64,000 nucleotides of DNA, from the sequence record PV593634.1. One strand, 5' to 3'. The number at the start of each line of letters is the position of its first letter. Positions within the stretch are counted from its first letter, which is position 1. Of the stretch, positions 9,656 to 64,000 are shown piece by piece. The notes beneath the pieces are model-generated. The model was not told the DNA's origin, did no database searches, and saw only the letters and a program-made list of their open reading frames with translations. The position numbers and the translations under genes were made by a program.

Positions 9656-9664
9656 CCATAAATA

Positions 9665-9698
9665 ACTACTGGGGCGATCTTTTGATCGCTCCAATAGT
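9665..9698 (+). terminator. stem-loop
   Basis: TGGGGCGATC-TTTT-GATCGCTCCA core between tail genes. Confidence 0.5.
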
Positions 9699-9714
9699 TT
9701 AATCGAGGTTTTAA

Positions 9715-13506: not shown

Positions 13507-13507
13507 G

Positions 13508-13532
13508 AGGAAGGGGAGGAAACTCCCCTCCT
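13508..13532 (+). terminator. stem-loop (core identical to 27440..27455)
   Basis: AGGAAGGGGAG-GAAA-CTCCCCTCCT. Confidence 0.55.
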
Positions 13533-13550
13533 AATATCTGGGAGATATCC

Positions 13551-16500
13551 ATGTTTGTAGATCCAGACAAACCCCTACCGCCTGCGGGTGTCAAAGACGA
13601 CACACTAGGTTCGGTACTGGACGCGATTATTAATATATCTAATGCTCGTTCTGAAGTTCAGAAAGATGCTGTTGAGTTTGAGAAGGTTACAACTCAAGCA
13701 TTGATCGATGCTAATAAGAAGATCGACCGATTCGATACCGAAGTTCAAACCGCTTTAGCAGCTCACACCAATAAGAAAGGTGCGGTGCATGGCGAAACAA
13801 AAGAAACAGTAGGTCTTGAGAAGAAAGAGAACTGGAGACCGGCAACACTTAACGAACACGAAGCTGGACAATCGAAGAACACATTCGTAGTTCCTATTGG
13901 TTTGCATATGCTGGTTAAGAAGTTCTTGACTATCGATCCAACCAACTATCTTCGTTCACGTATCTTTCCTATCGCTTCTGGCGGACAGTTAGGTAACGTT
14001 CCTCAATGGCCATTTAACTGGAAAGAAGGTGAAGTAGTTGAGTCCTTCGAAGACCCAATGACTTTCTTTACTGATACTCCTTGGGAGTTCTCCAGCGATC
14101 AGGGTGTACGTATTTATCCTGCGATGAACGGTTCTGACGTCCTTACTCAGCATGTCGCCGATCCTGGCCGTGTTAAGCGCGCTGTAACCCCTTGGGGCGG
14201 TACTGACGTTCGTGTCTATAATAACACCCTTGATATCCGTAGAACCCGTCCTGGCGTCTTACGTGGCGAATCTAACGATGAACCATTTGGCGAATTGATT
14301 AAAGGTTCTTCTCACTTATTTGACCGTCACTCTGTTTTCTATGCTGAGAACGGGAAGATCGGTACTCGTGCATTTAACAAAGTGCGTTTACCGTTTGATA
14401 AGTTAAACCGTGAGAACTTCAATGATAACTGGAGTGGGATTATCGAAGCACGTGAGGAAACGATTTATAACATCTATACATCGTTCAAGAAAGGAAACAT
14501 CGGTGGACATGGTGAAGGGATTTACTTAGTCGTTGAAATGGATCTGTTCAACTACACCCAAAACGGTATCGTTGTTAAAGACGGTCCTGGTCGCCCTGCT
14601 GAAACTATTGCCACGGTTCAAGATCGTTTCAATACCTTTAGTTGGCAGATGCAAAACGCTAAGTTCAAAGTGATGGATCGTGGTCCAGGAACACCAACTG
14701 GTTTCTGTATGAACATTAAGGATATCCTGTCGTTCACCGATTCCCAGCGTGAAGAATTCTGGAATGGACTGGAACGCAATCAGGTAACTAAGATCGCGTT
14801 CACCTGGTCTAACCGTTTGAATGGTGATTTCAGTATCCGTATACCGATGGGGTTCTATAATAAGAACCGCACGGCATATAACAACTTCTACATGGACTTA
14901 GGTTTCCACGTATTGGAAAACAAACCAGGGCTGAGCGCAACCATCTCAGTTCGTCCTCTGCGTGATATCGATACCAACATTCAAACGCTGGATGCTAACT
15001 TCGATGTTAAGCCAACAGGTCGCTTCATTACCTATGGTCCGAACGTTGCCAATAACGTATTCCACCCACTCGTGTTTAACGGTGTGTTCGAATCGAATGG
15101 CGGTCACATCAAAACCTATACCTTCTATAACCGTCAGTATGTTGGTTTCTATCAGCATGACGTTAAGGGTGTTGGGGATTGGATTGCCAAAGGTGAAGCT
15201 ATTCAACCTAACCTGGTTAAGTATTACTATGGACAAATGTCAACCCTGAATAATGATGGGATGTACGGTGACCACCTTCGTCACATTCCTTTAGGGATGG
15301 AAGGAGATACGGTTTATTACTTAACCCATAGTCGTGACTGGAACCAACAGTATCGTAACTCCATTGCGCATACTCAGTTGGATACAGCTCCAATCATGTT
15401 AAGTGACTTGGGACACCCATATGGTCCATGGCGTAACGACCTGACTTGGATTAATCCGAACAACTCACGCATCCCTGACTTCCTGGTTGTAAACTCCGAG
15501 ACCGCAGTTGGATTCGAAACTAACTGTATGGTATTTAACTCCCAGAACCTGTTCAGAGGTTACACCGGTTATAAGTACGAACCGAATAACCCTAACTCTA
15601 CAGTGACGGGTGAAAACGAAGTTCAACTTGATGACTTGATTCTTTCCCACCTGGCTCGCGTTGGTGGCGGTTGGTCTGTTAACCACAAGCAACTGTTCTA
15701 TTACAAGAACCGTCTGTACTTCTTCACACAGTGTCTGTCCGAAAACGATTGGCCTGCTGATGATTACGATTGTTACTATGGTTGGTATAATTCTGCTTAT
15801 ATTGAAACAGATCAATATGGTCGTAACACAATCAAGTTGAATGGAACAGCTGAATCTAAAGTCACCATCAAGAAGATGAAGGTGAACACCAAAGCTTCAG
15901 CCACTCGGGTCTGGAACGATGTACAAGGTCGTGATGGGTTTAACCATACCGATGTTTACATGATGTTAATGAACCGTACAGGTAACGCTTCTAAATTCCA
16001 GCTGATGGTTAACCTTGCACCTCATAACAACTTCTACTTCGAGTTCGAGTTGTCTATTGATGAAGGGCTTGGAACAACGGATGTGATCCCTAACCCTAAC
16101 GCTATCGATCCGGTATTCCCTTACGGTCCAGATGGCTTCAAAGTTGATTACGATACTGTCATCGCTTATGGTACTAAGACACCGCAACGTCTGCACATAA
16201 ACTTCCAGTCTCCGGTTATGCTTAAGAAGTCCATGTGGAGCTACAGGAGGACCCCTGGACATTATGGTGTCTTTGCTCAATCTATCGGTACAGAAGTCGT
16301 TAACGGCGGTCTGATGAACGCTGTAGAGGGAACCGACATCTATCCTGTAGGATCTGCTGTTACCATTGGCGGTTCTAACATTATTGTTAAGAAACCGGTA
16401 AGCGCTTCAGAACGGCAGTTCAAAGGTAACGATGAGCTGTTTGTAAGGATGAACGGTCTTGATCTGGAAATGTACGGATTGAGAAACAACCCTAACGGTT

Positions 16501-18714: not shown

Positions 18715-19695
18715 TTAACCTACAACTTCACCTGAAGTATCACCACCAGATCTAACACCATTGTGTTTATGACCAAGGTATCTAATACCATCAATAGTCC
18801 AACCACCAGATACAGAACCAGTGCCGCCAAACTGAGAGAACGCCCCTTGAATGCCGACGTTACCTTCAACGGTGTAGTTTCCGTTTTGGTTGTAATTGCC
18901 TTCGTGTGTAACATTTCCTTTCATAAAGATCTCTGGGGAAGTCAGAGTTGTCTTCTTAGTTTCCATGGTAATGGAACTGTCAGCTTTAAGCTTCAGATCT
19001 TTACACTGTAAGTCAATGTTGTTCTTACCTTTCAACAGCATACTGTCTTCACAGCTCATCGTGATGTTCTTCTTCTCGATGTTCAGGTAGGACTTCTCTT
19101 GGTTGATAAAGGAGAAAGCATGCTCCATAGAGTTAATAGAGAGAATGTTATCCTCACCATCTACAATACCAAACTGACCATTACCTGTGTCCAAAGAGAT
19201 ACAGTAAGATGTTGGCTCCCCATTACCTTGGCCTGTAACTAACTGGACCATCTTTTTATGGGAAGATATCATGAATATGTAATAGTTATCCGGTGTTACC
19301 GGAGAGTTCTCATTCACTTCAGGAGAAGCAGAGTAAGCAAAGATTACCGTTTCTAAACGCAGAGTTCCATCCATACCGAAGTAAGTCCAACGATATTTGG
19401 ATTGACCTTTAAACTTATACACCACAACCTTACTACCATTACGAACATCGGGAGCAGTTACACGGTTGGTGTTAAAAGCTAACCAAGTTGCCGGTACGGT
19501 GTTGGAGGATAAAGTTGTACTGGAGTGCGTATCTCCTGTAGGTGTTTTGGTTGTCACCGTTTGCGTTTCGACTTGAGTTGTGACTTCACCGTCACCCTCA
19601 GGAAACATAGATGGGATGTAAACCTGAATCTCATCTGTATCCGTTTCCTTGTCCATCGACACGATGCCAATGCCGAGACATTCTAATACGTTCAT
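18715..19695 (-). CDS. baseplate central spike (phiKZ gp164-like / gpV-like)
   Basis: N-terminal OB-like region, beta-helix-like repeats (GNVTHEGNYNQNGNYTVEGNV) and a terminal metal-binding HxH apex (GHKHNGVRSG); divergent from SbcC as in phiKZ gp164/gp165. Confidence 0.8.
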   Translation of the reverse strand: MNVLECLGIGIVSMDKETDTDEIQVYIPSMFPEGDGEVTTQVETQTVTTKTPTGDTHSSTTLSSNTVPATWLAFNTNRVTAPDVRNGSKVVVYKFKGQSKYRWTYFGMDGTLRLETVIFAYSASPEVNENSPVTPDNYYIFMISSHKKMVQLVTGQGNGEPTSYCISLDTGNGQFGIVDGEDNILSINSMEHAFSFINQEKSYLNIEKKNITMSCEDSMLLKGKNNIDLQCKDLKLKADSSITMETKKTTLTSPEIFMKGNVTHEGNYNQNGNYTVEGNVGIQGAFSQFGGTGSVSGGWTIDGIRYLGHKHNGVRSGGDTSGEVVG

Positions 19696-48834: not shown

Positions 48835-48840
48835 CATAAA

Positions 48841-48868
48841 GCTACTCTACCCAAATGGGTAGAGTAGC
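48841..48868. terminator. bidirectional stem-loop between convergent units
   Basis: GCTACTCTACCC-AAAT-GGGTAGAGTAGC perfect 12-bp stem. Confidence 0.8.
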
Positions 48869-48893
48869 TAGTTTAATCACTTATTTATTTTTG

Positions 48894-49562
48894 TTACTGG
48901 AACTGAACATCAAAACGGTTGGTCGGAATTGAACCATCGTTAATATTGGTATTCAGTACCACATTGGTTTCCAGACTGAACGGGGTACCGCCATGTGTGC
49001 CAGCAACTGTAACAACTGCTGTTGCAGTAACCACAGCGTCAGTAGCAGACTGAATGGATTTGAATGTGTAGGTGGTGCCTTCACTGGTGAATTCAAACTT
49101 ACCAGCGATACTTTCAGGAGTAACGGTAACACCCGTAACAGAACTAGTGATATCTTCAGCGCCTTTCATTACTTTAAATGTCAGGTTTTGAGTAGCCCAC
49201 AGATTCATGGTCAAAGGTGTGCTGACATCGGAAAGCGTTGCTGCTTCAACAACATTAATAGTCAGACTAACCGTCTTGGTGGATTTACCCCAGTTTTCAG
49301 TATCTGCGTGTTCAGAACCTGCGTCAGCGTATTTGAATACAACTGTTGCATCTTGAACGCCCACAGCAACTGCAGTCATTACGAATGACACAGTACCCGC
49401 GCCAGCATCTGGCGTCCCGTCACCCAGCGTGATAAGACCTTTCAGGTCACTAGCCGCTTCATCAATGGTTACTTTACTTGGAACACCGACACCTTCAAAA
49501 GTAGGTTTGATGACCATAGCAGAGACTTGACCATTGTCAAGTGTATATGACTTATCGCTCAT
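48894..49562 (-). CDS. 222-aa two-domain beta-sandwich (Ig-like) protein, putative self-polymerising fibre subunit
   Basis: Thr/Val-rich; contains the family motif TPLTMNLWATQNLTFKVMKGAEDIT; ends IPTNRFDVQFQ. Confidence 0.65.
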   Translation of the reverse strand: MSDKSYTLDNGQVSAMVIKPTFEGVGVPSKVTIDEAASDLKGLITLGDGTPDAGAGTVSFVMTAVAVGVQDATVVFKYADAGSEHADTENWGKSTKTVSLTINVVEAATLSDVSTPLTMNLWATQNLTFKVMKGAEDITSSVTGVTVTPESIAGKFEFTSEGTTYTFKSIQSATDAVVTATAVVTVAGTHGGTPFSLETNVVLNTNINDGSIPTNRFDVQFQ

Positions 49563-49575
49563 TTTATATCCTTAA

Positions 49576-51099
49576 TTATAGGAACTCAACGTTGAACCGA
49601 TTGGTTGGAATCTCGCCGTTGTTTATTTCCGTTGATAAACTCACGGTCTGACTCATAACATGCTCAGTACCACCATCCATGAAGGTAAAGTTCAATTGAG
49701 CATTAGCTGCCAATTGCGTGGTGGTTGAAGAAGAGATTGCTTTAATCCCCCAACTACTACCAGAGAGTTTCACCAGTTCGTATTTTGACGATACTTCTGG
49801 AGAATCAGTCATTGTAATATTGGAGATTGGACCACTGATATCTACACCATTATTGGTGATGGTAAATACTAGAGGTTTGGTTTCCCATAACTTAAGCGTC
49901 AGTGGTGTTGTCTCCACAACATAATCGGCGGACTTAGGTGTCACAGTACATTGCTGTGCGTAAGAACCTGTTTTACCATTAGCGGAGAAACTCACACCAA
50001 CAGCATAATCGATATCGGCAGCCGTGGTGTTATCGCGCATCAACTGGAAGGTTACTGTGTCCGCAGTTTTCTCAGTAATTTTCAGATCGGCTTCATTCAT
50101 GCTCATGTTTACATCGGTAGCTGGTATAACGAGACCATCAAACTGGAATTCGATATCTTTAACATGGGTAGATAAAGATTCACCAACTACCTTACTTGGA
50201 ACCTTGCTAAGTACAATGCCAGGTTGATAAATGTAAGTAGGCAATCTGATAATAGCCATCTTGTCAATGGTATCGGTAGATTTACCAAATCGCAACTCAC
50301 TTTCCCCTATACCAACACCTGTTATACCGGAGAACTGTATAGCACGCTGGTTGGTGCCCTGTAGGTTGTTCCTCCATACGGTTGAGCGGTACAGGATACT
50401 ACTAGATAAAATATCAACATGCGTATTAGGGTTAGGTAGACCTTTATAATCGAGAGTAAAGATGTAAGGTACTGTGTTACCATCGTTATATGGAATGCGG
50501 AATTCATCGAACTCAACAGTTACTTTGGTTTCACGACCGTCATAAGGAGATACTCTCCATGACCCTCTAGCTGTTCTCACGGTTCCAGCCGGATCGATAT
50601 CTGTAGGTAGTTTGAATGTGTAATCGCATTCCACTATGCTATCAACAGTATTAACGGGTATTCCAGTCATATACCATTCATTTGCAGGACCACCTACAGA
50701 TGAATAAGGTTTAACCCACTGGTTGTCGACTATCGAAACTTCCAGTAATTGATCGGTTATGTCTTCCACACCGTGTTTAACAATGAATGGAAGCTGTGCA
50801 CTATGCCCCCACATCTTAGTATTAATCTGGTGAGTTTCGACAGTGAAGTCGATTTCGATGACAGTATGTTTAAATGTACAAGGGACTTTAACTTGATAAC
50901 GTCCCTGGTATGTAAATGTGAGGTTCAGGTTGTATAACGCCTCTTGTGTAACCCCGCCCTTAAATTCATAGGTGATCGAGTCATCCTGAATAGAAGCGAT
51001 CTGGACCCCAGCGTGGGGGTCCAATGTGATTACCATTTGAGGATCATTATTACTAATTACCTGACCAGCTATACGGACACTACTTTTTAGCGTGGTCAT
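49576..51099 (-). CDS. 507-aa Ig-like repeat protein (putative adaptor)
   Basis: N-terminus like 54599 (SNNDP.MVITL); C-terminus like the 222-aa gene (IPTNRFNVEFL). Confidence 0.65.
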   Translation of the reverse strand: MTTLKSSVRIAGQVISNNDPQMVITLDPHAGVQIASIQDDSITYEFKGGVTQEALYNLNLTFTYQGRYQVKVPCTFKHTVIEIDFTVETHQINTKMWGHSAQLPFIVKHGVEDITDQLLEVSIVDNQWVKPYSSVGGPANEWYMTGIPVNTVDSIVECDYTFKLPTDIDPAGTVRTARGSWRVSPYDGRETKVTVEFDEFRIPYNDGNTVPYIFTLDYKGLPNPNTHVDILSSSILYRSTVWRNNLQGTNQRAIQFSGITGVGIGESELRFGKSTDTIDKMAIIRLPTYIYQPGIVLSKVPSKVVGESLSTHVKDIEFQFDGLVIPATDVNMSMNEADLKITEKTADTVTFQLMRDNTTAADIDYAVGVSFSANGKTGSYAQQCTVTPKSADYVVETTPLTLKLWETKPLVFTITNNGVDISGPISNITMTDSPEVSSKYELVKLSGSSWGIKAISSSTTTQLAANAQLNFTFMDGGTEHVMSQTVSLSTEINNGEIPTNRFNVEFL

Positions 51100-51110
51100 T
51101 CATGATTCCT

Positions 51111-54100
51111 TTATTCTGGAAGTTTAACGTTTTGAACAACAGTAACAGTTTGCTTACTATTACCTTCGATGTCCTTAATGAATCCATCGCCAAGTTCGAG
51201 AGGATACATTCCTACAGTTAATTGAATGCTTGCTGGATATGCAAACTCGCCATCTTTAATAGTGAATGAGAACAATGCAGTGCCTGCAGCTTTAGCTGTA
51301 GCGTTGAAGGAGATCGTGCCGTCATTGTTGTTGACGAGATCTGCAACAGTAAACAGGTTATTCTCAACGGTCGGATTCAAGATCTGGGTATTTGTCAGGT
51401 TCTCAGATGGATCACCCCAACGGTTCTGATGGATCTGTAACGTAACCGGAGTTACGAGATTAGGCCCTAACAGAGTGTTGTCGTTGTTGGTTACAACGAT
51501 AGGTGTTTTGTTGACTTTTACAGAAATGCTACCATTACGGTACAAACCATCAACATCACTCAGGTGAAGCATCTTGATTGTAGCATAATCACCAGTCCAA
51601 CCAGTTTTAAGATCGAAACTGAAATCAGCCGTGGTTCCAACCTGAACAGCTTTAGCAGTGTCTTTGTTAAAGAAAGGATTACCGGTAACAGGGTTGTCAT
51701 AGTTGCGTTGCCAAATTAACTTACCCGTCATTGGGGAGTTATCAAGTCCATTCAAGAACTTGTCATTAATAACGCCTTCTGTGCTACCACCCCTGAATTG
51801 ACGTTCGCCAAAGTTGATGTTGGAGTTCATGTTGGCACCAGCTGTCTTGTTGATATCCAACCTGACATCGGCTTGGTCCAGTTCACCATAAGTATATGAA
51901 GGATCGGAAATCAACCGATACTTAATATAGAACCCTTTGAATCCATCGGTATCTTGCCGTATCTTAATGAAGAGTTTCCCTTCATCATCAACACCGACAA
52001 TCTCAGGTAGTTCTGCAACATCTCTTGTTGAAAGAGAGTAATCAATATCTGGATCTGTAGGATCCATCTCAATGCCGTCTTTCAAGAATACCAGTTTTTG
52101 TGGCGTACCATTTCTATTTCTCAGCATCGGGTTGATAGAGAAACGACGACCTTCAACTATACCGCTACCGTTATACACCATGAACTTTCTAGATGTAATA
52201 TAAACGCTAACTGTATCATCAGCAGTCAAACCAGCATTTGGCTTACCTTCTTTGATCCTGTAAGTCAATTTAACAGTTTGGTTCTCAAGCTCTGTTCCGG
52301 CAGGACTGGTCAGCATTACGTCACAATACCCACCTTGGGTAGTAACAGATTTAACCGTTATAGTTGGGTTATCAGAAACAACTTCGATAACGTCCCCACC
52401 TAAGTTAACTCCGCCCATCTGAGCAACTGCTCTAACCATAATGTCGGAATCAGACTTACCGTAAACAGTTTTGTACTGAGGTTGGACAATAACGCTGAGA
52501 CCTTCAATAGCGACAAGATCGATCTTCTTAGGATAATGAACGTCACCCTCAACAACAGAGAAGGTTACCGAACCCGGACCCTTAGATCCATTACCTGTAA
52601 CACCCAACGTGAATGTGCCGTTATTATTCACAACTGTAGCTGCTTTAACTGTGCCGCTAAACATGATGTTGCGAATATCGTTAGAGGTAGCGAAGGTATG
52701 ATCTTCCTGACCTAAACGTTCCTGAACTAAAGTAACGAATACATCAGTTTTAACACCATCAACAAAGTTAAAGGTATTATTCAGAACGTTAGCAGTGATA
52801 GGAGCTTGAGCGACCTGTTGGTTACCTGTTGCCTTATAAACAACACTTCCGCCAGGTAGACGAACATACTCAGTCATTTCAGCAAGAGCACCAGACCAAC
52901 CTGTCTTAGCGTTTCGACCAAAACCAATGTTGTTAGTTGTTGTCGGTTTATCCAGCAGTTCGATAATAGCATTACCGGTGGACGGATTGTTCACGTACTT
53001 GGTTAACAGAACCTTATCAACAGTAACGTCAGCATCACCGATCTGATACTTGTTGTTCATTGCTACTGTTTCTTGGTTCGGAGCCAAACTACCAGCTTGG
53101 GTATACTTGCAATCTGTTATAGCGCTACCTGCGGCTATGGTAACGATAGAAGTTACTAAGCCAGTACCCGGAACACCAGTAACCTTAACATCGTACTGAA
53201 TGATAGCAACGTTAGACCCACCGGAATAAATCAATTTACTAATGAACCCACCATCGTATTTATCTACGAACTGAGCATATGTAGACGACCCTGATTGAAC
53301 AGAGATAGTTACACGAGGATCGGTCACTGAGAACTCAGTACCATCGCCATCGGAGATAACAATGTCAGAAGAGAACAAGCTTCCCTTGGGTAATGTGTAA
53401 GAAATATTGTTCGGCGTCACGGTGACAATTTTAGCTGGAAGAACTACTAGACCTTGAACGTAGTTTGTGGTTCCTCCGTTATATTTCAGTGTGACGGTTG
53501 TACTATAACTCGCATTGGTCCCGGTATTGTTAGGCACGACGATTTGGTAATTTATTCCGTCGGGTTCTTGGGATTCAACGGTAAGCAATGCTGGGTTATC
53601 AATAGTAATTTCCAACAAATCGTTAGGTACTGGCTCACCGTCTAGCTCGACCACATACTTAACTTTAACGATAGCATTTTGCTTGCCGTTAATACTTGCC
53701 GGGTCGCGGCTAATCATAGCCAGACCTTTAACATATCCCTTCATCGGTAGAGTTAGTTCTAACTTATCTTTACCCAACACGGATGAAGCACCATTAGCTC
53801 TGAATACTAACTTACCAATAACCTCCACAGAAGAAGGCGCATTATAATTAACCCAGATCTCTTGTTCCGGTACTTTAAGATCTTGGCTAGCGTAAGTAAT
53901 AGGTGCTGTAACAGCTTCAGCTTGCACATAACGGACATATGGTGTCGCATCACGATAGTTACGATACTTGATCGAGAACTTAACTGGGCTTGGTGTTCCT
54001 ACAGGGATCTTAATAGAATCAGTTAAAAGAACAACTTTTAACTCTAAACCGTCATATTCAGCAATATTAAAAGTACCTTCGTAAGTACGAGTAACTTCTG

Positions 54101-54599
54101 GTAAGTCATCTGGTAAACGGAAAGTGTACATTACCTTTAACGTTGTAGCGTCAAATGCGGTATCTGATTCAATGGTCCAAGATTTAGCCCCAGTATCTCC
54201 GGCTTTCAGTACAGACTTGGGAACGAAAGACACATCCACCAATTGCGATGTGATATCTTCCTCTCCCTTCATTACTTTGAACGGTAATGCTTCACTACGT
54301 TCCCAACAGGTAGCCGCAATAGGTGTATCAACAATTTCCCAATCCTTCACTGTGCCCAAGTTAACGAGGGACAGTGGGATATCTAGAGAATAGAGTTCTT
54401 TATATACGAAAGACAGACTAAGATCGTAGAGGGTGTCCGTTGGGACACCCTCTTTAAACGAATATGTAATAAAGTCATTACCGATCGTGGTGATTTCGAC
54501 TTTCGCCGCATCAGCACCTTTCAAGGTAATGACCATATTTGGATCGTTATTACTTAGGGCCTGTCCATCGAGTAACATTGCTTGTTTTAATGTACTCAT
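51111..54599 (-). CDS. 1162-aa Ig-like repeat protein
   Basis: About 100-aa beta-rich repeats (W....LPF.V..G.EDIT; IAEYDG); ends ...VQNVKLPE. Confidence 0.7.
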   Translation of the reverse strand: MSTLKQAMLLDGQALSNNDPNMVITLKGADAAKVEITTIGNDFITYSFKEGVPTDTLYDLSLSFVYKELYSLDIPLSLVNLGTVKDWEIVDTPIAATCWERSEALPFKVMKGEEDITSQLVDVSFVPKSVLKAGDTGAKSWTIESDTAFDATTLKVMYTFRLPDDLPEVTRTYEGTFNIAEYDGLELKVVLLTDSIKIPVGTPSPVKFSIKYRNYRDATPYVRYVQAEAVTAPITYASQDLKVPEQEIWVNYNAPSSVEVIGKLVFRANGASSVLGKDKLELTLPMKGYVKGLAMISRDPASINGKQNAIVKVKYVVELDGEPVPNDLLEITIDNPALLTVESQEPDGINYQIVVPNNTGTNASYSTTVTLKYNGGTTNYVQGLVVLPAKIVTVTPNNISYTLPKGSLFSSDIVISDGDGTEFSVTDPRVTISVQSGSSTYAQFVDKYDGGFISKLIYSGGSNVAIIQYDVKVTGVPGTGLVTSIVTIAAGSAITDCKYTQAGSLAPNQETVAMNNKYQIGDADVTVDKVLLTKYVNNPSTGNAIIELLDKPTTTNNIGFGRNAKTGWSGALAEMTEYVRLPGGSVVYKATGNQQVAQAPITANVLNNTFNFVDGVKTDVFVTLVQERLGQEDHTFATSNDIRNIMFSGTVKAATVVNNNGTFTLGVTGNGSKGPGSVTFSVVEGDVHYPKKIDLVAIEGLSVIVQPQYKTVYGKSDSDIMVRAVAQMGGVNLGGDVIEVVSDNPTITVKSVTTQGGYCDVMLTSPAGTELENQTVKLTYRIKEGKPNAGLTADDTVSVYITSRKFMVYNGSGIVEGRRFSINPMLRNRNGTPQKLVFLKDGIEMDPTDPDIDYSLSTRDVAELPEIVGVDDEGKLFIKIRQDTDGFKGFYIKYRLISDPSYTYGELDQADVRLDINKTAGANMNSNINFGERQFRGGSTEGVINDKFLNGLDNSPMTGKLIWQRNYDNPVTGNPFFNKDTAKAVQVGTTADFSFDLKTGWTGDYATIKMLHLSDVDGLYRNGSISVKVNKTPIVVTNNDNTLLGPNLVTPVTLQIHQNRWGDPSENLTNTQILNPTVENNLFTVADLVNNNDGTISFNATAKAAGTALFSFTIKDGEFAYPASIQLTVGMYPLELGDGFIKDIEGNSKQTVTVVQNVKLPE

Positions 54600-54615
54600 G
54601 GATTTTACAGTTCCT

Positions 54616-57600
54616 TTATTCAGGGTTAAGTACAGATTGTGTTAATGTCACAGGATTATCAACGTCACCTTGTCCAGTGGATTGGAATCCTGGTGCTGGA
54701 GTAAGTCTCAGCTGAAGTGCGGTTTGTGTTACTGTTAAATCAGACCTACTAGTTAGCGTGGGGCGCCAGGGGTTAGTGAACCCAAGTCGAACAACAGTTT
54801 CTTTGCTGTTAACATCAATATCTTTAATAAATCTAACAGTGAAACTATCATCCGCAATAGATCCAGGAACTAGTTCAATAACATCGTTGGGGATCGGCTC
54901 TAACCAGGTTCCTTCACTAAGTTTCATATTGGTGCCATCATAGTTAGCTTTACCTTTAATGACAAAGGTATCGCCGTATTTTCCACTTATAGCTAATGGA
55001 GTCCATGGTGATACTTGGAACGGATAGTTGGGATTATAAGTAGTAAATTCAACAGGTACTTGCATTTCACCGGTAGGGTTCCCAGGATATCCCCCAACAG
55101 CTGTTATAACAAAATACTGAACACCGTCAATAACAAAAATTCCTGAATTGATGGTGTAGTCGATGCGTACCCGACCAGTATATTCGACACTACTCTTGTA
55201 AGTGACGTATTTACTCCCACCTTCACCATAACCCTTGTACCTTATTGGTGTCGTTATTTCTTCACCACGATAGAACGGCTTGATTTGAATCCAAGAACTC
55301 GACCCCCACGAACCAGCTCGTGTTCCAGTTATTGTGAAAGTTAACTCATTCCCGTCATACTCAGCGACGTTATAAGTAATATCGATAGTGTATCTTTTTC
55401 CCGACGCGTCATCTGGTAGACCATACTCCCATGTCACAACCAATGGTCCTGCTGGACGCGCTGTTTCCGAAACTATTTGATACGTTCCAGTTGGGTTCAG
55501 TTCCAATATGTTTTCGTTGGGTAAACGAGAAACATCAATCGGGGTGACGGTTCCTCCGCCAGTTTGATTGATGGTGAAAGGCACCCCAGTAAGTTTATCC
55601 CAAACTTTAACGTTCATTACTTTAGGAGTAACTTCGAGGTTCTTATTGACATTAATTGTCAAATCAGCAGGAGTAGTACGCCCACTCCAGTTAGCGATAA
55701 CCTTACATTCCACTGTTTCATCAGCATCAGTATTTTTGATTATTCTAACTGTGATGTCGTTAGCACCCTTACCTACAACCTGTCCATATCCAGCCGGTTC
55801 TACTGTATAGTTGATGTTTCCATCAGCCATATTGAGTTTGCTTCCATTCCACAACAGAGTTCCAGGGATCGTTTCCTGATAACCTGCAACACCAGTAATG
55901 GACGACTTAGAAAGAGTGAATGCCATACCGGATGAATCAACAGTCGCTTCAATAGCCAGGGTCACTTTGTAACTGAATCCATCAGTATCCGTAACTGTGA
56001 ATTCAGCAGTAACATCACCAGCCGCACCACCGCCAATAAAGTTGGCAGAGAACTCGCCGTTAACGTTCTTGATCTCGTTCACAGACTGGATAGGACCAGT
56101 GGTTACAGCAGTACCTGCGATAGTGGCATTCGCAAAGTTATACTGCACAATAGAATCATCAATGAATCGTTCCTGACTCAAAGTGAATTTCACTTCGGTA
56201 GAAGAACCTTTGAAACCTTCAAAGCTGGTTTTGTTCGGAGTGACCGTAATCAATGCAGGAGGAATAATCAGTTCAGAATCACGCAATACCCAGTTATCAG
56301 CAAGATCAGGGAATACCGCCACCATGTTTACAATAATTTTTCCACCCGTCCAGCCAGACTTAAACTTCAGTGCATCGCGATAGATATCACCAGGGGCACC
56401 TATAAGTTCGAGTTCGCCAAGTAAAGCATTACCCGTTGAAGGATCGTTTTTACCTGATAATGATAAAACAGTTGTGGGTTTGGAAATACTGTAACCTGAC
56501 CTTTGGAATTCAACAGGGATAATGTTCTCTGCATTACCCAAAGGTTCCTTCAAAGCTTTTAACGTTACTGGGATTAAGTTAGTCGTGCTGAATGTCGCTT
56601 TTACATCGACGTACCCAGAACCTTCAGGAGGTTTGACGCCATCATTGTAGGTCACATATATCCGGTTGATAAATGTACCAGCCGTTCCAGGATCTCTATT
56701 GAAAGCAAACCACATATAGCGATCTTCGATACCCACGATATCAATAATAACTGGACTGGCTCCAGCATTACTCATTTCGTAAGACAACCGCGGATCATTA
56801 GGTTTTAGTAGTTTTCCACTATAATAGATCTTAGCATCCCAGCTATATGGTCTTGCATAAGGTTGAGTACTTGGTACTAACGTAATTGGTAATACGTACA
56901 AGCCCTTGGTGACGTAGATCCCGGTGAAGTTACCAGCCCATTTGTTTAGTCCAACAGTTGTTCCTGGAGTATCATCAATCGTGAGGGTTAACACACATGC
57001 GTTAGAGGCAGCACCTGATGTATCAGGTACGGTATACTCTATGATAACACCTAAATCGTCATCAGTAGGTCCGATGATGCGGATAGGGGCGGTGAACCAA
57101 GTACCTACTTGTACAATCCCACTAAACCCTGACTTCAGTGTTTTACCTTTATACTCGGGCCAAACGGTGAATCGGTTAGTGTTATTTCTGGAAATAGGGA
57201 TTTCCGTGATTACACCAACACCTCGACCATAGTCGGCCGAAACTTTAAACGTGATTCCATCCCAAGCAGGAATGCGATATTGACCATAACCCACATGAGT
57301 TTCCCAAACCCCATCAACTAGAACTTCATAAGTAAAGACACCACGAGTACCGGTAGCGACTTTACCTGGGTTATCAGCAACCGACCATTTATTAGGATTG
57401 TTAGGATCCGTTTTAAGATAGACGTTATTGGGTACAAGCTGAACATTTCTTATCTGGCCTGTTACGTCCTGATCATTAACAAGAACTTGGAACGGAGGTA
57501 CTGTGAATTCCTGGAACATAACCGTTTGAACGTCGCCAGGTATCATCTTCAGAACAGGTGCAGTGTCAGCAACTAGATTGATAACAAAAGTCTGTTTCCC

Positions 57601-59175
57601 TACGGCAGTTTCAGTAGGAGTGAATTCATAAGTGGCTTGGAAATCGCCATTAACACCTTTCCCGGAAACATAGAACAATTCATTTTTGTCATTGGTAGGT
57701 TGAGACACACCAACAGCCCCGGCCCCCGTTTGTGATACCAGTCTGTATGTTCCAGGGAGTGTGACTAGCGCGTCACCGCGCTGCTGTTGCGCTTTCAAAA
57801 GAATAGGTGTAAATCCTTCCGTTCTTCCATCAATAACCTTAGGTTCATAAGTAGCTACTACAGGAGCAGCTTCAATAACATCACCATAATCAGCAAGGCG
57901 TCCATACTGCCACTGTTTCTCCCACAAAGGGGTTTCTGCTTCAAAGCGAACTTTCAAATACATCGCTTGTATATTATAAGTTTGCTTGCGATAATCCACA
58001 GCATGTCTGGTAGCGAACTGTCTTAGAGAGTTAAGTGGGACATTGGTGAATGGCTCTTTATATAGGTTCGCAAATGTAACCATATCGATCCCAACTAACT
58101 CACCTTTCTCTATAATAGCACCTTTGGCTGTCGGGCGATTTGAAGCATCGTAGTTATCAGGATAGTTAAGGTCTGTAACTTGCCATACCCAATTTTCGTC
58201 ACTATTCGCCAGTACTTTATACTTGGGTAGAATTCCAAATTGTGTTGGGAAAGCAGCAGGTCTTTTATGACAATACCATGACGTACCAGAACGAGCGGTA
58301 ACCCCGTTATAAACCATAACCACGTTAATGATGTAGTTTGTTTTGACAGAGACTTCTGGTAAGAACTCCCCCACCAAACCTTCAGGCAGTGCCTCTATGA
58401 ATTTGACCCCTGCGTCATCAGCAGCAACGTTACCGGCCAACCGAACACTCATGCCAGGAGCGTTGTAAGCTACTGGATTAACACCGCGATAGTATTTACA
58501 GAAGACAATTTGCTTATCTCCTTTAACACCATTGATGGTACGATAACGAGGTTCGATCCAGATACGAAGATCTGTGGCATTGGAAGCAACTACGTCGGCA
58601 TAACCTTGCAATACAACAGTCTTAGTCGGCTCCTCAGGTCTAAAGACATGCACCATGAACCATTTGCTATCACCAAGCTCCACTCCCGTCACATCCATGC
58701 GATGGGTGACACCATCTTCCAATACACCCTTATATTCTATTCCTAGTCCAGAGTTCGTATTAACGGTGTTGTTAACACCGATCTCACCAGCCCCAAGTAG
58801 TCTACCGTGATAGCTTACCTGGAACTGTACCATGAAGCCATTGGTTAATAGGACACGTTCATGCCCGTCAAACGACCCAACAATACGAACTACTAACTGA
58901 CTGGCTGTAGTTCCTTTTACTGTGACATCTGTTTTGGCTTCGAGAGGGAAAGGACTACCTTCCCAATCCACCTCTAATTTGAAAGTTGCTTCCTCGGTAA
59001 GATCTGTCTCATCTGCACCCACAACGGTAAAACTATAGTCACCATTTGGTTTGAGATAAGGGGACGGTTGTCCCCCTACTTCGATGGCAGTAAGACGGAC
59101 ATCTTTAGTGATATCCGTCCCAGTGATAGGATCATTGACCGCGAAAGGAACCGATGACGATTGGTTTAATTCCAC
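54616..59175 (-). CDS. 1519-aa Ig-like repeat protein (colinear paralog of 59192..63793)
   Basis: Starts MELNQSSSVPFAV and ends PVTLTQSVLNPE; GTG start after AGGA. Confidence 0.7.
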   Translation of the reverse strand: MELNQSSSVPFAVNDPITGTDITKDVRLTAIEVGGQPSPYLKPNGDYSFTVVGADETDLTEEATFKLEVDWEGSPFPLEAKTDVTVKGTTASQLVVRIVGSFDGHERVLLTNGFMVQFQVSYHGRLLGAGEIGVNNTVNTNSGLGIEYKGVLEDGVTHRMDVTGVELGDSKWFMVHVFRPEEPTKTVVLQGYADVVASNATDLRIWIEPRYRTINGVKGDKQIVFCKYYRGVNPVAYNAPGMSVRLAGNVAADDAGVKFIEALPEGLVGEFLPEVSVKTNYIINVVMVYNGVTARSGTSWYCHKRPAAFPTQFGILPKYKVLANSDENWVWQVTDLNYPDNYDASNRPTAKGAIIEKGELVGIDMVTFANLYKEPFTNVPLNSLRQFATRHAVDYRKQTYNIQAMYLKVRFEAETPLWEKQWQYGRLADYGDVIEAAPVVATYEPKVIDGRTEGFTPILLKAQQQRGDALVTLPGTYRLVSQTGAGAVGVSQPTNDKNELFYVSGKGVNGDFQATYEFTPTETAVGKQTFVINLVADTAPVLKMIPGDVQTVMFQEFTVPPFQVLVNDQDVTGQIRNVQLVPNNVYLKTDPNNPNKWSVADNPGKVATGTRGVFTYEVLVDGVWETHVGYGQYRIPAWDGITFKVSADYGRGVGVITEIPISRNNTNRFTVWPEYKGKTLKSGFSGIVQVGTWFTAPIRIIGPTDDDLGVIIEYTVPDTSGAASNACVLTLTIDDTPGTTVGLNKWAGNFTGIYVTKGLYVLPITLVPSTQPYARPYSWDAKIYYSGKLLKPNDPRLSYEMSNAGASPVIIDIVGIEDRYMWFAFNRDPGTAGTFINRIYVTYNDGVKPPEGSGYVDVKATFSTTNLIPVTLKALKEPLGNAENIIPVEFQRSGYSISKPTTVLSLSGKNDPSTGNALLGELELIGAPGDIYRDALKFKSGWTGGKIIVNMVAVFPDLADNWVLRDSELIIPPALITVTPNKTSFEGFKGSSTEVKFTLSQERFIDDSIVQYNFANATIAGTAVTTGPIQSVNEIKNVNGEFSANFIGGGAAGDVTAEFTVTDTDGFSYKVTLAIEATVDSSGMAFTLSKSSITGVAGYQETIPGTLLWNGSKLNMADGNINYTVEPAGYGQVVGKGANDITVRIIKNTDADETVECKVIANWSGRTTPADLTINVNKNLEVTPKVMNVKVWDKLTGVPFTINQTGGGTVTPIDVSRLPNENILELNPTGTYQIVSETARPAGPLVVTWEYGLPDDASGKRYTIDITYNVAEYDGNELTFTITGTRAGSWGSSSWIQIKPFYRGEEITTPIRYKGYGEGGSKYVTYKSSVEYTGRVRIDYTINSGIFVIDGVQYFVITAVGGYPGNPTGEMQVPVEFTTYNPNYPFQVSPWTPLAISGKYGDTFVIKGKANYDGTNMKLSEGTWLEPIPNDVIELVPGSIADDSFTVRFIKDIDVNSKETVVRLGFTNPWRPTLTSRSDLTVTQTALQLRLTPAPGFQSTGQGDVDNPVTLTQSVLNPE

Positions 59176-59191
59176 GATAATTTCCTGTTAG

Positions 59192-62100
59192 TTATTCCGG
59201 GTTGAGAACGCCCTGTTTAAGAGTCACAGGATTCTCCATATCCCCAGAGCCTGTTGATTCGAAACCAGGAGCTGCTGTCAACTTCATACTGACTGCTTGT
59301 TGTGTTACAGTCAATGCTCCTCTACCCTGTGTTTCCCCAGTGACATTCAACCGTGCATCAAGAGTCGTTGTCACTGTGTTAACATCGATGTCTTTAAGGA
59401 ATCTAACTTTAAATCCATCCTTAGTTTTAGAACCAGGTACTGTTTCTAAGATCCCTTGCGGATAGAATAGCATATCTGTATACACAGCTTGCATCAAGTC
59501 AGATGGTGTTCCATTACGCCATACCTTAAAGTTGAGCTGATACTCCTCACCGAATTTACCCACCAATGGATTAGGATTAAAGTCACTCAATCCCGTTGGA
59601 ATGTTCGGATTGTAAATGCTGACAATGAGTGTAGCGACGGCGATATCTTTGCCTAACACATTCCCTGTAGGACTAACTCTGATAGACCAAGTGTTTGGCT
59701 TACCATAGAGTTCAACATTTTTACCTCTGAGTGTTAAGCGACCTTGACCTGGGAAGTTGGTATAACCTTCCTGGTTAACACAAGGTACGTCTATAGTCCC
59801 TAGGTTGGTTGGGTTTTCTGTAGCAGGTTCGGCTTTACGATAAACGTAGAAGTCAGCTTGGAACGACCCGTTATATACAGTTCGATATAGTTCGGCAGAA
59901 GGAATGATCTCCAACTCATGGCCGTTAAACTCAGCCACGTTGTAGGTGATATCTATGGTCCTTTTGACTTCTTCCGGATCTGTCGGTAAACGATATTCCC
60001 ATGTAACTATTTCGGTTCGGGCTGGCATTACACCTTCACCTTTCACAGTCCACATGTTCACAGCCGGTTTATTCCTGTTCTCCATCTTAACGGCGATTAC
60101 AACATTGTCGTTAACTGGTTTACAGTCTAATACCGTATTTGTGATATCAACTTCACCTTCCTTCATTACAAAAGGATAACCGTTAATACGTTCCCAGACC
60201 TTAACGTTGAATACCTTAGGTTCGATACTCAAGTTTTTCTTAACGTTTACCGTTACTGGTTGAGAAGCGGTCATGCCTAAGAAATTGGCAGTGATATTAA
60301 CCACCTGGGTTACGTCATCAGGGGAATTACGCACAATACGAAGATCGAACGTTCCAGCTGTTCCGTTCTCGAATTCAACCCAACCTTCAGGCTCAACCGA
60401 ATAGATCATATTGCCGTTAGCGTTATCCCAACGAAGATCGGTATCATTATACTTAACCGTACCAGTTATCGTTGTTACATCACCAGCGACTCCTGTCACA
60501 ACGTTGTTCTGAAGAACCATCGACATCTGACTTGAATCGATAACCGCATTGACGTTTAGAACAACATCATGACTATCACCGTCGTCTTCAGTAATCGTCA
60601 GAGTTATTGTGCCAGGTCCTTGGGTAGCGTTACCGTAGACATCAACAATAAAGGTCCCATTGTTGTTAAAGGCACCTGAAGCTTCCTTGATAGAGCCAGT
60701 AACTGCACCAACAGGATAAATGTCAGCGTTAGCAAAGTTATGCGTAACTAACTCCTCACCGATAAGACGTTGTTGTGATAAGGTGAAGCGGATCTCTGTT
60801 TTGCGGTTTGCTATACCATCAATTTGATCAGTGGCTTGTGTTACTACAATTGGCGCTGCTGGAACGGTGAATGTAAGCGGTACTGAGGTATTTGGATAAC
60901 TAGCTGAACCAAACGTCATGGAATAGGTGATATCTCCACCTTTATATCCAGAACTAAATTTCAAGTGCCCAGTATTTACATACTCAACCCTGTTCTTGAC
61001 AACGTCAGAATCTTCCGGAGTTACCTTAAAGTAAGGAGCGGTTAACGGTACAATTGATTTAGGATCTAAAGGGGGGTTGTTTGCTACCTTGACATCTATA
61101 GGGATCAAGTTATCTTTATTGGGAAGCGGCGCTTCTTTAAGTATTACATTTATTGGAGCAATTTCCCTTGACTTACTAAATCCAACAGGGAAGAATGCTT
61201 CAGCGGATGTATACTTAACACCGTCCTTAACATAGTCGACAACGAAATACTGGTTGTACGTACTCTCACTTGGTGGATACTTGGTAACAAAAAGATAAGT
61301 TATGTTAACGGTTGATGATACTGGCATGACATATGCGTTCTTTCCATTAACACCTGTATCGATAATTCTTACTGTGATATTAGGATCATTATTAGGAATA
61401 ACATCCCCATCCCATTTGAATACAGGCTTCCATGTCAAGGTGTTATTTAAACCTGTCGGAGAAGAGGTAGGGGTTGCTGTCACAACAGATATTCCTTTAG
61501 GAACCGCAGTACAGTTGACCCATTCAAACACTTTGGTTTGTTTGTCAACTAACTCGGCATCAGGAATTCCTTTTACTTTATAAGTAAATAGTTGGGTATT
61601 AGTTACAAATGAGGTATTAGCCTCTACGGTAACAATTACCCCATCACCAGCTTCATTAACAACCTGTTTGCGAATGGTCAAATTACTGCTTAAAGGGGAA
61701 AGCTCAATAAGATCAGCTGCTGGTCTGCCTTTGTAAGTAGGGTAGAACGTGAAATCTTTATTCCCGCCGACAGGTATGGTCAGAACTTTACCTACTCTGT
61801 CACCAGCTACGTATTCTGCATTAGCTACTAACCAGACTCCATCCCAAGCAGCAATACGGTAATCACCTGCACCTACACAGTTATAAGTAACTCCATTCAC
61901 TTCAACGTCATATGTGAAGTAGGTCCTGGTTGTAGTTTCTGTTGTAAGAGCATTTACAATCTCCCACTCAGTCGTACTCCCCTCCACATATTTAACATAA
62001 GTTGTTTCCATCAACTTGATGTTTTTAACTTTGCTAGTTTCTAATGTCCCATTAACGATCGCACCATTTACCTTGACGTTAAATGGAAGCACCTTAAATC

Positions 62101-63793
62101 GATCCCAGATTTTGGTAGAGGTGACAAATGGTTCATAGTCGATATCCAAAGTGTTATCGGCTCTGATGGTAAACTGAACTGTTTGTCCTGTAATTTGGTT
62201 ATCGGCACTACGGAATGTCATACTGGCTACAGCTTCTCCAGATACACCACGAGTAGTGAACTGAAGCATGGCATTGCCTTCAGGCGTTGTCGTAAGCTGT
62301 CTATACTGAAGAGAACCCGTTACCGTGGCTGTGCTAAAGACACCTGGAATACGAACCTTTTGCCCATCACGTTCTTGCCAGGCAGAAATGAGTACAGAAG
62401 GATATCTACCCGCTATACCGGTAACAACTTCTGTGTTTAACCGATATTCAATAGGGGCCATTTCGATTGTGGTTTCTGCATTGAGACGCCACATGGTCTG
62501 ATACAGAGCAGGATCGGTGATAAAAGGAAGATCCAGAACAAATCCAGATAGTAAAACTCTTTGCTTCATCCAACTGGCAGAAATCTCTTTAACCAATTGG
62601 TTAATTGAGTTCAAAGGCGTCCCAGGTTCAACAACTACCTGTTGAATGATACCACCACCAGAGAACTGGTTAACAAAGATACTACCCGCTCTGACCTTGG
62701 CACCTTCTATAGTGTACCACGGCGGTATGTTCAATCCGTTAACTGGTCCAAACTGAGTAACGAGCTTCTGTACTTGGTTGGCGAACAAAGGCTGTTGCAT
62801 TACCGCTGTGGACATCATATCGGTTCCTGGAACCCATGTGACATCAACCCTTGCTACAGCTTCAGATCCAGTATATCCCGCCTTGAGATCGAATTGTCCA
62901 TAGAAAGATCCAGCTACCGGATTGCTGGAAGCAACCGTAGGTTTACCTAATATCTTAAAAGTGATGTGGTCTTCGAATCGTTCATCAATTGTTATGACAG
63001 TACTTACGTTTGGTACATTCGTGGAACCCACTAATGTGAGTGTAAGACCTGGATCGTTTAACTTAATTGGGATCCCGTCTTTATATACAGTAAACCAACC
63101 GTTAATTAATTCTCCCTGATGACCAAATATAGAACCAGACGCCTGATGGATTGGCTGAATGCGCATCCCAGCAACACCAACCCTCAGATTCATGTCGATC
63201 TGGATCCAATCCTCCCCTTCTACCAATCCAGTAGTTCCTTTTCTCAGGACATAAAACGTGAAGGGTCCGATCATTGTATCGGCACCTTGCCATTTAACAT
63301 CCAGCGTTTTGCCATCTGCTTTGGTGGTTACACTAATAAATTTGATTGGGTAGGCGGTGTCTGGTGGAGTACCAGGTTTGTGCTTCTGAATTATTACGTC
63401 GTCAGCCGTTAAGTCTATACCACGGTAACTACTTTGTAACTCCATATTTAAAACTGAGTTAACAGGTGCGACAATAACAGAACCTAAAGGCTTAAGAACA
63501 CTTACTTTCATGAAGTCAGCTTGAGTAGCCTGAATCGTCATGTCTGTTGTAGCGGTTAATCGATGGACTTCCCCGTCAAAGGGAACGTCCAGGGTAAATG
63601 TTGTCGGAGTTACAATCTCATCTCGTGCAGCGTTCACAACTGTAAAGGTGTAATCGCCATTCGGTTGAAAGTAGGGGAAGTCTCCCTCCCCTACTGATTC
63701 AATAGAAATAAGCTGGACATCTTTCGTGATATCCAGCCCGGAGATAGGATCTGTAACTGCGAACGGGACAGCACTAGACTGTTTCAGTTCCAC
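59192..63793 (-). CDS. 1533-aa Ig-like repeat protein
   Basis: Starts MELKQSSAVPFAV and ends PVTLKQGVLNPE; GTG start after AAGGA. Confidence 0.7.
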   Translation of the reverse strand: MELKQSSAVPFAVTDPISGLDITKDVQLISIESVGEGDFPYFQPNGDYTFTVVNAARDEIVTPTTFTLDVPFDGEVHRLTATTDMTIQATQADFMKVSVLKPLGSVIVAPVNSVLNMELQSSYRGIDLTADDVIIQKHKPGTPPDTAYPIKFISVTTKADGKTLDVKWQGADTMIGPFTFYVLRKGTTGLVEGEDWIQIDMNLRVGVAGMRIQPIHQASGSIFGHQGELINGWFTVYKDGIPIKLNDPGLTLTLVGSTNVPNVSTVITIDERFEDHITFKILGKPTVASSNPVAGSFYGQFDLKAGYTGSEAVARVDVTWVPGTDMMSTAVMQQPLFANQVQKLVTQFGPVNGLNIPPWYTIEGAKVRAGSIFVNQFSGGGIIQQVVVEPGTPLNSINQLVKEISASWMKQRVLLSGFVLDLPFITDPALYQTMWRLNAETTIEMAPIEYRLNTEVVTGIAGRYPSVLISAWQERDGQKVRIPGVFSTATVTGSLQYRQLTTTPEGNAMLQFTTRGVSGEAVASMTFRSADNQITGQTVQFTIRADNTLDIDYEPFVTSTKIWDRFKVLPFNVKVNGAIVNGTLETSKVKNIKLMETTYVKYVEGSTTEWEIVNALTTETTTRTYFTYDVEVNGVTYNCVGAGDYRIAAWDGVWLVANAEYVAGDRVGKVLTIPVGGNKDFTFYPTYKGRPAADLIELSPLSSNLTIRKQVVNEAGDGVIVTVEANTSFVTNTQLFTYKVKGIPDAELVDKQTKVFEWVNCTAVPKGISVVTATPTSSPTGLNNTLTWKPVFKWDGDVIPNNDPNITVRIIDTGVNGKNAYVMPVSSTVNITYLFVTKYPPSESTYNQYFVVDYVKDGVKYTSAEAFFPVGFSKSREIAPINVILKEAPLPNKDNLIPIDVKVANNPPLDPKSIVPLTAPYFKVTPEDSDVVKNRVEYVNTGHLKFSSGYKGGDITYSMTFGSASYPNTSVPLTFTVPAAPIVVTQATDQIDGIANRKTEIRFTLSQQRLIGEELVTHNFANADIYPVGAVTGSIKEASGAFNNNGTFIVDVYGNATQGPGTITLTITEDDGDSHDVVLNVNAVIDSSQMSMVLQNNVVTGVAGDVTTITGTVKYNDTDLRWDNANGNMIYSVEPEGWVEFENGTAGTFDLRIVRNSPDDVTQVVNITANFLGMTASQPVTVNVKKNLSIEPKVFNVKVWERINGYPFVMKEGEVDITNTVLDCKPVNDNVVIAVKMENRNKPAVNMWTVKGEGVMPARTEIVTWEYRLPTDPEEVKRTIDITYNVAEFNGHELEIIPSAELYRTVYNGSFQADFYVYRKAEPATENPTNLGTIDVPCVNQEGYTNFPGQGRLTLRGKNVELYGKPNTWSIRVSPTGNVLGKDIAVATLIVSIYNPNIPTGLSDFNPNPLVGKFGEEYQLNFKVWRNGTPSDLMQAVYTDMLFYPQGILETVPGSKTKDGFKVRFLKDIDVNTVTTTLDARLNVTGETQGRGALTVTQQAVSMKLTAAPGFESTGSGDMENPVTLKQGVLNPE

Positions 63794-63813
63794 AATTATA
63801 TTTCCTTTGTTAA

Positions 63814-64000
63814 TTACTGAGCAACTTCAACCTTGAACGGAGTAGCGTAAGACTTACCATACTCAACAGTCATTGGTGTGAGGTTAGTGATTACCGGTCT
63901 TGCTTCAACAGGGTTCTGCGTAACGGTAATGTCTACAACATATTCACTTCTTCCTTTGTAAGTGAACTTCAGTTGTGCTGTACGAGCTATAGGCACTGAG
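63814..64000 (-). CDS. 3' end of a further Ig-like repeat gene entering from beyond the window
   Basis: Frame open to the window edge; ends PVITNLTPMTVEYGKSYATPFKVEVAQ, the start of a family repeat. Confidence 0.7.
   Translation of the reverse strand, partial: SVPIARTAQLKFTYKGRSEYVVDITVTQNPVEARPVITNLTPMTVEYGKSYATPFKVEVAQ

Follow-up and report, generated by a model that had tools for sequence, protein, structure and literature searches.

Gene boundaries inside immunoglobulin-like domains of a jumbo phage array suggest a string of proteins joined by fold complementation

As ordered, non-covalent, head-to-tail polymers, chaperone-usher pili are built from incomplete immunoglobulin (Ig)-like subunits, each completed by a strand of its neighbour, and the fit between strand and groove sets the order of the subunits. 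In the type V pili of Bacteroidia (FimA/Mfa1), a C-terminal strand replaces the N-terminal strand of the next subunit once that strand has been removed by a protease at the cell surface. The long tail fibre of phage T4 (gp34-gp35-gp36-gp37) is encoded by consecutive genes that specify consecutive fibre segments, such that gene order is fibre order. Here we describe an array of genes for tandem Ig-like domains in Shewanella phage SXP01 (PV593634.1; genome of 269,939 bp; 100% identical over the 15-kb array region), examined in a window of 64,000 nucleotides (nt), the whole stretch of DNA that was analysed, in which a window coordinate equals the record coordinate minus 124,000. The gene boundaries of this array fall inside beta-sandwich domains, the tail at the C-terminus of each protein and the first domain of its successor being two parts of one domain type, and we consider it probable that the split pieces link end to end by fold complementation in trans as one string.

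Since SXP01 encodes multisubunit RNA polymerases, GroEL and a giant 'structural lysozyme', it is a phiKZ/OBP-like jumbo phage. Its gene order runs from nrdB through a gene of 928 amino acids (aa) and a giant of 3381 aa to the five downstream genes of the array, which PV593634.1 calls 'hypothetical protein' wherever it annotates them (the 1519-aa gene has no annotation). A first-pass annotation, made from the sequence alone, had proposed that each array gene ends with the opening strand or strands of a repeat domain and that the next begins with a domain missing them, in three matching types (A, B and C). Its five complete minus-strand genes (1533, 1519, 1162, 507 and 222 aa, 4943 aa in total) were borne out in length, start codon and coordinates, and so were the spacers of 20, 16, 16, 11 and 13 nt (frame offsets 2, 1, 1, 2 and 1; 0 of 5 in frame), each with an AGGA, which lies 6-12 nt ahead of the start codon; the terminal peptides that it quoted were located in the array proteins. 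The 222-aa protein is the best conserved member of the array, with 52-99% identity over 24 relatives. The parts of the array are as follows.

63814-64000 (-): C-terminal 61 codons and stop of the 3381-aa giant gene
PV593634.1 187814-197959 (L001 29921-40066): full giant gene, 3381 aa, which runs off the window
Outside the window: conserved N-terminal anchor of the giant, ~570 aa
SXP01 giant, aa 3237-3318: uncut A junction
63817-63897 (-): 27-aa B-end tail of the giant, PVITNLTPMTVEYGKSYATPFKVEVAQ, with the first strands of a B-type domain
63794-63813 (-): spacer of 20 nt, with AAGGAA ahead of the GTG of the 1533-aa gene
59192-63793 (-): 1533-aa protein gene, GTG start, body all-beta
63614-63793 (-): B-start of the 1533-aa protein, aa 1-60
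59195-59287 (-): A-end tail of the 1533-aa protein, last 31 aa
59176-59191 (-): spacer of 16 nt with AGGAA, between the 1533- and 1519-aa genes
54616-59175 (-): 1519-aa protein gene, GTG start, B-start, a paralogue of the 1533-aa protein
54619-54711 (-): A-end tail of the 1519-aa protein
54600-54615 (-): spacer of 16 nt with AGGAA, between the 1519- and 1162-aa genes
51111-54599 (-): 1162-aa protein gene, ~12 beta domains
54354-54599 (-): A-start acceptor domain of the 1162-aa protein, aa 1-82
1162-aa protein, aa 83-180 and aa 186-290: uncut domains of B type and C type, respectively
51114-51203 (-): A-end tail of the 1162-aa protein, aa 1133-1162
51100-51110 (-): spacer of 11 nt with AGGAA, between the 1162- and 507-aa genes
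49576-51099 (-): 507-aa protein gene
50854-51099 (-): A-start acceptor domain of the 507-aa protein, aa 1-82
49579-49614 (-): C-end tail of the 507-aa protein, last 12 aa
49563-49575 (-): spacer of 13 nt with AAGGA, between the 507- and 222-aa genes
48894-49562 (-): 222-aa protein gene, two Ig-like domains, N-terminal C-start
48897-48947 (-): C-end tail of the 222-aa protein, aa 206-222

Syntenic arrays downstream of nrdB were found by tblastn in Pantoea phage Survivor, Klebsiella phage N1M2, Serratia phages Yubaba and Sureiya, Pseudomonas phage OBP, Erwinia phage AH04, Edwardsiella phage pEt-SU and Kosakonia phage Kc263, and four further phages came from IMG/VR. Terminus classes were defined from alignments of the last 50 and the first 60 residues of all array proteins, whose ends sort into three C-end and three N-start classes (A, B and C), and profile hidden Markov models (HMMs) of the six classes were run over all open frames of 12 distinct phages. 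The three terminus types are real, as the class HMMs are specific and match the expected termini at E 1e-16 to 1e-37; scanned piecewise with them, the whole SXP01 genome gave zero matches outside the array and, inside it, the termini plus one uncut internal copy in the giant. Conservation of the types in related jumbo phages, which the first-pass annotation had proposed as a check, was found in the form of like-with-like pairing at 34 of 35 gene junctions across the 12 phages. The sole mismatch is the junction between the 1533- and 1519-aa genes of SXP01, where an A-end is followed by a B-start and the two proteins are tandem paralogues; the bodies of this pair have drifted (28% identity overall) while the termini are still 64% (first 60 aa) and 68% (last 41 aa) identical. 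A search of 1.84 billion representative proteins found the A-start domain in 62; where the match covers the full domain, 46 start within residues 1-8 of the protein (protein lengths 84-3124 aa) and 3 are internal, close to the C-end of giants. In a reading of the termini by eye for a sub-code within type A, one that would forbid polymers of the 1162-aa protein, (1162)n, the tails and N-starts of SXP01 and Survivor resemble two orthologous tiers, the features of which are mixed in phages with one A junction.

The same junctions occur uncut in relatives, as was seen in alignments in which upstream and downstream pieces were always kept as separate rows and stops were never read through. The SXP01 giant matches the A-end profile at aa 3237-3280 (E 1e-9) and the A-start profile at aa 3274-3318 (E 1e-8), and one continuous domain therefore holds both halves. 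Junction A is continuous within five giants (SXP01, N1M2, Yubaba, Survivor and pEt-SU), and at the homologous alignment column it is split in OBP, AH04, Kc263 and two metagenomic phages, where the giant ends and the next gene begins. Junction B is uncut in Survivor (5094 aa), pEt-SU (5119 aa) and OBP gp206, and SXP01, N1M2 and Yubaba have it split at homologous columns; OBP, with A split and B continuous, is thus cut one domain earlier than SXP01. The C-end HMM alone gave no significant match to the internal uncut C junction, and junction C was tested with an HMM built from the uncut region of ten giants. To that model the C-end pieces align at positions 32-134 (E 1e-8 to 1e-10) with their last 11-14 aa unaligned. 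The first aligned residues of the C-start pieces fall at positions 143-150, with E 1e-8 to 1e-11 for 14 of the 16 (the two weak ones, from the Survivor 415-aa protein and OBP gp203, score 0.05 and 0.28); on these alignments, the C tail fits the strand between the two matches. Uncut orthologues or uncut paralogous domains thus exist for all three types, with A and B continuous in orthologues at the same columns and C continuous in paralogous domains of the giants. Such an anatomy is the textbook 'Rosetta stone' sign of fusion or fission, made sharper by a break that falls inside a fold.

The downstream protein does lack strand A, as the first-pass annotation held, but at A and B it keeps its own copy of the next strand. 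There the upstream tail consists of strand A, a loop and the next strand, and the downstream protein opens with its own copy of that next strand: at A, a tail ending in PVTLKQGVLNPE and a stop faces a start in MSTLKQAMLL, and at B a tail ending in VEYGKSYATPFKVEVAQ and a stop faces a start in (M)ELKQSSAVPFAV. The strand duplicated at these split junctions is present as a single copy in uncut domains, and junction C shows no strand duplication. Among orthologues the two copies at A and B are each conserved in a distinct way, and both are therefore under selection. GTG is the start codon of all four B-start genes (window 63791-63793 and 59173-59175; L003 15367; L004 17992), and it lines up with a valine codon of the Survivor and pEt-SU uncut domain, a hint that a short duplication produced the cut and turned an internal Val codon into a start. 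The annotation of N1M2_161 (L003 15367-19986) falls ~200 codons short of the conserved GTG start. Upstream of the B cut, at a distance of ~125-170 nt, lies one further feature.

63921-63974 (-): near-invariant DNA patch, present in SXP01, N1M2 and Yubaba, the phages with a split B junction

At the DNA level, the 15-kb region matches another genus nowhere but in this patch (Serratia phages, 92.6% over 54 nt); ~45 nt of it are nearly invariant among SXP01, N1M2 and Yubaba, synonymous sites included, and an 18-mer taken from it is confined to these three phages. The patch may act as an internal promoter or mark an exchange boundary, and its function is unexplained.

Predicted structures, all of them single-chain AlphaFold models, show tandem Ig-like beta-sandwiches of ~95 aa each. 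The model of the 222-aa protein, made with 24 relatives, is all-beta with two domains and a mean predicted local distance difference test score (pLDDT) of 92, and its closest structures in the PDB are tandem Ig modules (E 1e-8, probability 1.0), with titin Z1Z2 at the top and RPTP Ig1-2 also among them. The 1162-aa protein is likewise modelled as all-beta, with ~12 beta domains and a mean pLDDT of 78, while its sequence gave sub-threshold Cadherin_5/Big_9 matches only in Pfam. The conserved C-terminal tails are modelled as coil at pLDDT 30-74 (in the 222-aa protein the last 17 residues, where the score drops to 74 and then 55), and they are among the best conserved stretches of their families (conservation 0.82 vs 0.61 in the 222-aa family, where no other part is conserved as well, and 0.77 vs 0.61 in the 1162-aa family). 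In the 1162-aa model, pLDDT falls below 50 only at residues 1-8 (the duplicated strand), in two short loops and in the entire tail 1133-1162. Its N-terminal domain has five solid strands, at a confidence below that of the internal domains, and an internal A-like domain (293-386) has two additional opening strands; the A-start acceptor domain is 93% conserved vs 61% for the body. In the uncut domains of the same protein the equivalents of the donated tails are strands by DSSP (B, 87-91 and 107-111; C, 187-191; A-like, 293-305).

We propose that the operon downstream of nrdB would yield one long thin string of ~70 Ig-like domains, made as six or seven polypeptides and starting at the 3381-aa giant with its conserved ~570-aa N-terminal anchor. 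Each later protein opens with an Ig-like domain without its first beta-strand, for which the 12-31-aa tail of the preceding protein is exactly the missing piece; after translation from the closely coupled genes, the tail would insert into the first domain of the next protein and complete the sandwich in trans. Set by the three mutually distinct junction types, the order would be the giant (B-end), then the 1533- or 1519-aa protein (B-start, A-end), the 1162-aa protein (A-start, A-end), the 507-aa protein (A-start, C-end) and the 222-aa protein (C-start, C-end), and the linear order would be the gene order outward from the anchored giant, the product presumably being a virion fibre that points away from the anchor. 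Proteins with one type at both ends may also self-polymerise, as in the (1162)n and (222)n of the first-pass annotation. The anchor fits this starting place: the first 600 residues of the giant are 48-64% identical across the clade and 24-29% in Aeromonas jumbo phages, and in the OBP-like clade the anchor is confined to the giant. Co-folding of tail and acceptor in trans seems the most economical reading of these data. Since the acceptor at A and B still has a second strand of its own, the donor hairpin has either to push that strand aside or to lie next to it. Displacement suggests a bolder scheme, which we hold as tentative and rather doubtful, in which the A and B joints form by chaperone-free strand displacement and, together with a simpler C joint, constitute three orthogonal, genetically portable connectors, cut and healed within one fibre. 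The acceptor's own N-terminal strand (pLDDT < 50) would cap the unfinished domain before assembly, the vacant strand-A slot would serve as a toehold for the incoming C-terminal hairpin, and the hairpin, made of strand A and a duplicate of the capping strand, would zipper into place, expel the cap and lock the joint.

Searches of Pfam, PHROGs and PDB sequences returned nothing usable for the array proteins, for the anchor or for the 928-aa protein encoded upstream. The donor-strand linkage put forward in the first-pass annotation is partly supported, by the split anatomy, the conserved matching of types and the uncut versions, but the likeness to chaperone-usher pili is functional only, consisting in donor-strand complementation. 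In chaperone-usher pilins the missing strand is the C-terminal G and the donor an N-terminal extension, whereas in the array the missing strand is the N-terminal A and the donor a C-terminal tail; the pilus subunits are single-domain, whereas the array subunits are multi-domain strings of 222-3381 aa. Pilus assembly also involves a chaperone, an usher and secretion, which the array is without: in eight annotated phages neither the operon nor its flanks carry a gene annotated as a chaperone or usher, and Pfam gave no match for the array proteins (the flanking genes were not Pfam-scanned). No similarity of the array proteins to pilin families was found among Pfam, PHROG or PDB sequence matches, and every test of pilin membership that was run came out negative. 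Because a strand is duplicated at A and B, type V pili are the closer analogy, their geometry resembling these two junctions (duplicated strands on both sides of the cut), unlike junction C, which has no duplication. They differ in that cleavage by a protease takes place at the cell surface, whereas joining of the array would be cytoplasmic with no cleavage known, and the array proteins show no lipobox-like starts, no Pfam match and no sequence relation to these pilins. With the T4 long tail fibre the array would share a gene order matching the fibre order, but T4 segments are trimeric beta-structures with dedicated joints and chaperones, whereas the array consists of Ig-like strings cut within a domain. 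Titin Z1Z2-telethonin, which contains the top structural match of the 222-aa model, offers Ig strings tied by beta-sheet augmentation at their N-terminal domains; there the strands come from a third protein, the titin domains are whole and the sequence is unrelated to the array. Within the same broad group of jumbo phages as SXP01, the DUF7941 fibres of Goslar are arranged head to tail and are thought to be long host-recognition fibres (preprint 10.64898/2026.04.21.720040), but they are homo-oligomers of paralogues with no split Ig domain described, whereas the array would be an ordered hetero-chain of a different family; no Pfam family was detected at E <= 0.01-0.1 on any array protein, in a Pfam copy whose inclusion of DUF7941 was unverified.

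Several observations weigh against a joined string. The duplicated strand at A and B is superfluous for simple complementation and is unexplained. In the single-chain models of the 1162-aa protein (A-start and A-end) and the 222-aa protein (C-start and C-end), the tails remain coil and do not dock in cis, a result that is neutral as to binding in trans. A search of the SXP01 genome for partners found no C-start for the C-end of the 222-aa protein except its own, and the 35 junctions, being of common ancestry, are not 35 independent observations. The array adjoins nrdB and small non-structural genes, outside the structural modules, and electron microscopy reports (N1M2 without visible fibres, Kc263 with 'visible fibers' of unassigned identity) are uninformative. 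Papers on N1M2, SXP01, Kc263 and ZPAH34 contain nothing on the array proteins, and a literature search found no published description of a split-Ig junction system.

Among the alternatives, recoding would leave the domains never split, as readthrough, a frameshift or a hop over the spacers would yield one polyprotein, and it could draw on how short the spacers are and on the same peptide motif flanking the gap at A and B, reminiscent of take-off and landing sites. It is nevertheless very improbable: orthologous junctions show frame relations 0, 1 and 2, their spacers span 11-137 nt, the 1533-1519 pair is non-matching, and a Shine-Dalgarno-like motif with an ATG or GTG start is found at 32 of the 35 junctions. 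The only in-frame B spacer, that of N1M2, contains additional in-frame stops, and the residues from the duplicated motif to the stop are conserved and so translated, which counts against recoding as well. Recoding was therefore rejected on variable frames, Shine-Dalgarno motifs, start codons and extra in-frame stops, the same observations that uphold the separate polypeptides of the first-pass annotation; because recoding is excluded, the tail strand resides on a polypeptide separate from its acceptor.

Strong purifying selection on a half-domain tail and on a strand-deficient domain would be unlikely unless the two co-fold, and for this reason we think it improbable that the termini are relics of fission, in which a giant gene was cut and its ends kept as boundaries for module swapping, with the proteins acting or attaching separately. 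Such a history would suit the wide variation of the bodies between conserved termini (the A-start/C-end gene ranges from 303 to 3124 aa), the short DNA patch near the B junction that is conserved across genera, and the cuts shifted or healed several times within the clade; yet conservation is at the protein level, DNA identity between genera is absent at the A and C junctions, and the downstream proteins have no anchor of their own. A further alternative keeps the joined string and denies that it is a tail fibre, making it a head or neck filament, or a non-virion scaffold at the cell surface or inside the cell. The operon does lie outside recognisable structural modules, large baseplate-adjacent virion proteins are encoded elsewhere (window 5966-18662), and chimalliviruses have other known filament systems (collar filaments and, in Goslar, DUF7941 fibres). 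We regard it as unlikely all the same, since a signal peptide-like start is absent and a conserved anchor with the most variable proteins at the distal end is the pattern of a host-recognition fibre; outside the clade, the structures matched belong mostly to phage tail and Ig-decorated proteins, though these matches are generic.

If split Ig-like domains are indeed completed in trans, this would be the first case known to us of phage fibre assembly by such means, with three distinct joint types amounting to an assembly grammar and with sister phages having the same joint either cut or uncut. It would account for the way in which jumbo phages make filaments of several thousand residues from manageable genes, give a function to ~25 kb of 'hypothetical' sequence per phage in the OBP/pEt-SU/N1M2 group, carry the donor-strand principle over from secreted bacterial pili to virus assembly in the cytoplasm, and supply structural work with naturally occurring connectors, each a short peptide and a domain. 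Because cut orthologues can be paired with uncut ones, the idea is directly testable.

At the far end of the array one more element was found.

48840-48869 (-): terminator-like hairpin with a 13-bp stem, 25 nt past the stop of the 222-aa gene

This hairpin marks the end of the operon. Many relatives' arrays close with a 'terminator' protein of ~294-507 aa that has a C-start and an unrelated C-end (L002 25373-26620; L004 26010-27485; L005 23649-25172; L006 21943-22827; L009 ~10717-11619), and the spacer ahead of it is longer, at 58-137 nt, often with a hairpin. SXP01, pEt-SU and Kc263 are without this protein and their arrays end in the 222-aa type, and in its place N1M2 has only a 62-aa C-start open reading frame. 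In the Aeromonas outgroup phage LAh10 there are three paralogues, each with its own anchor and with zero junction classes, and a gene annotated as a YadA-like protein follows them (L020 23278-26244, minus strand). In PV593634.1 the 1162-aa gene (window 51111-54599, minus strand) is annotated 7 codons too short. A protein 82% identical to the 1162-aa protein (P0030) lies on a 267-kb contig assigned to Salmonella enterica serovar Saintpaul, which is probably a jumbo-phage contig within a bacterial assembly. The SXP01 paper gives a head of 55 nm, a flexible tail of 117 nm and 83.68% genome identity to N1M2 (PMC12571629), figures that fit oddly with a 270-kb genome and with zero megablast match to N1M2 across the 15 kb of the array. 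Elsewhere in the window, three large 'virion structural' genes (1229, 1263 and 1703 aa; 5966-18662, plus strand) adjoin a baseplate assembly gene (18715-19695, minus strand) and are probably a conventional baseplate or tail-fibre set, distinct from the Ig array.

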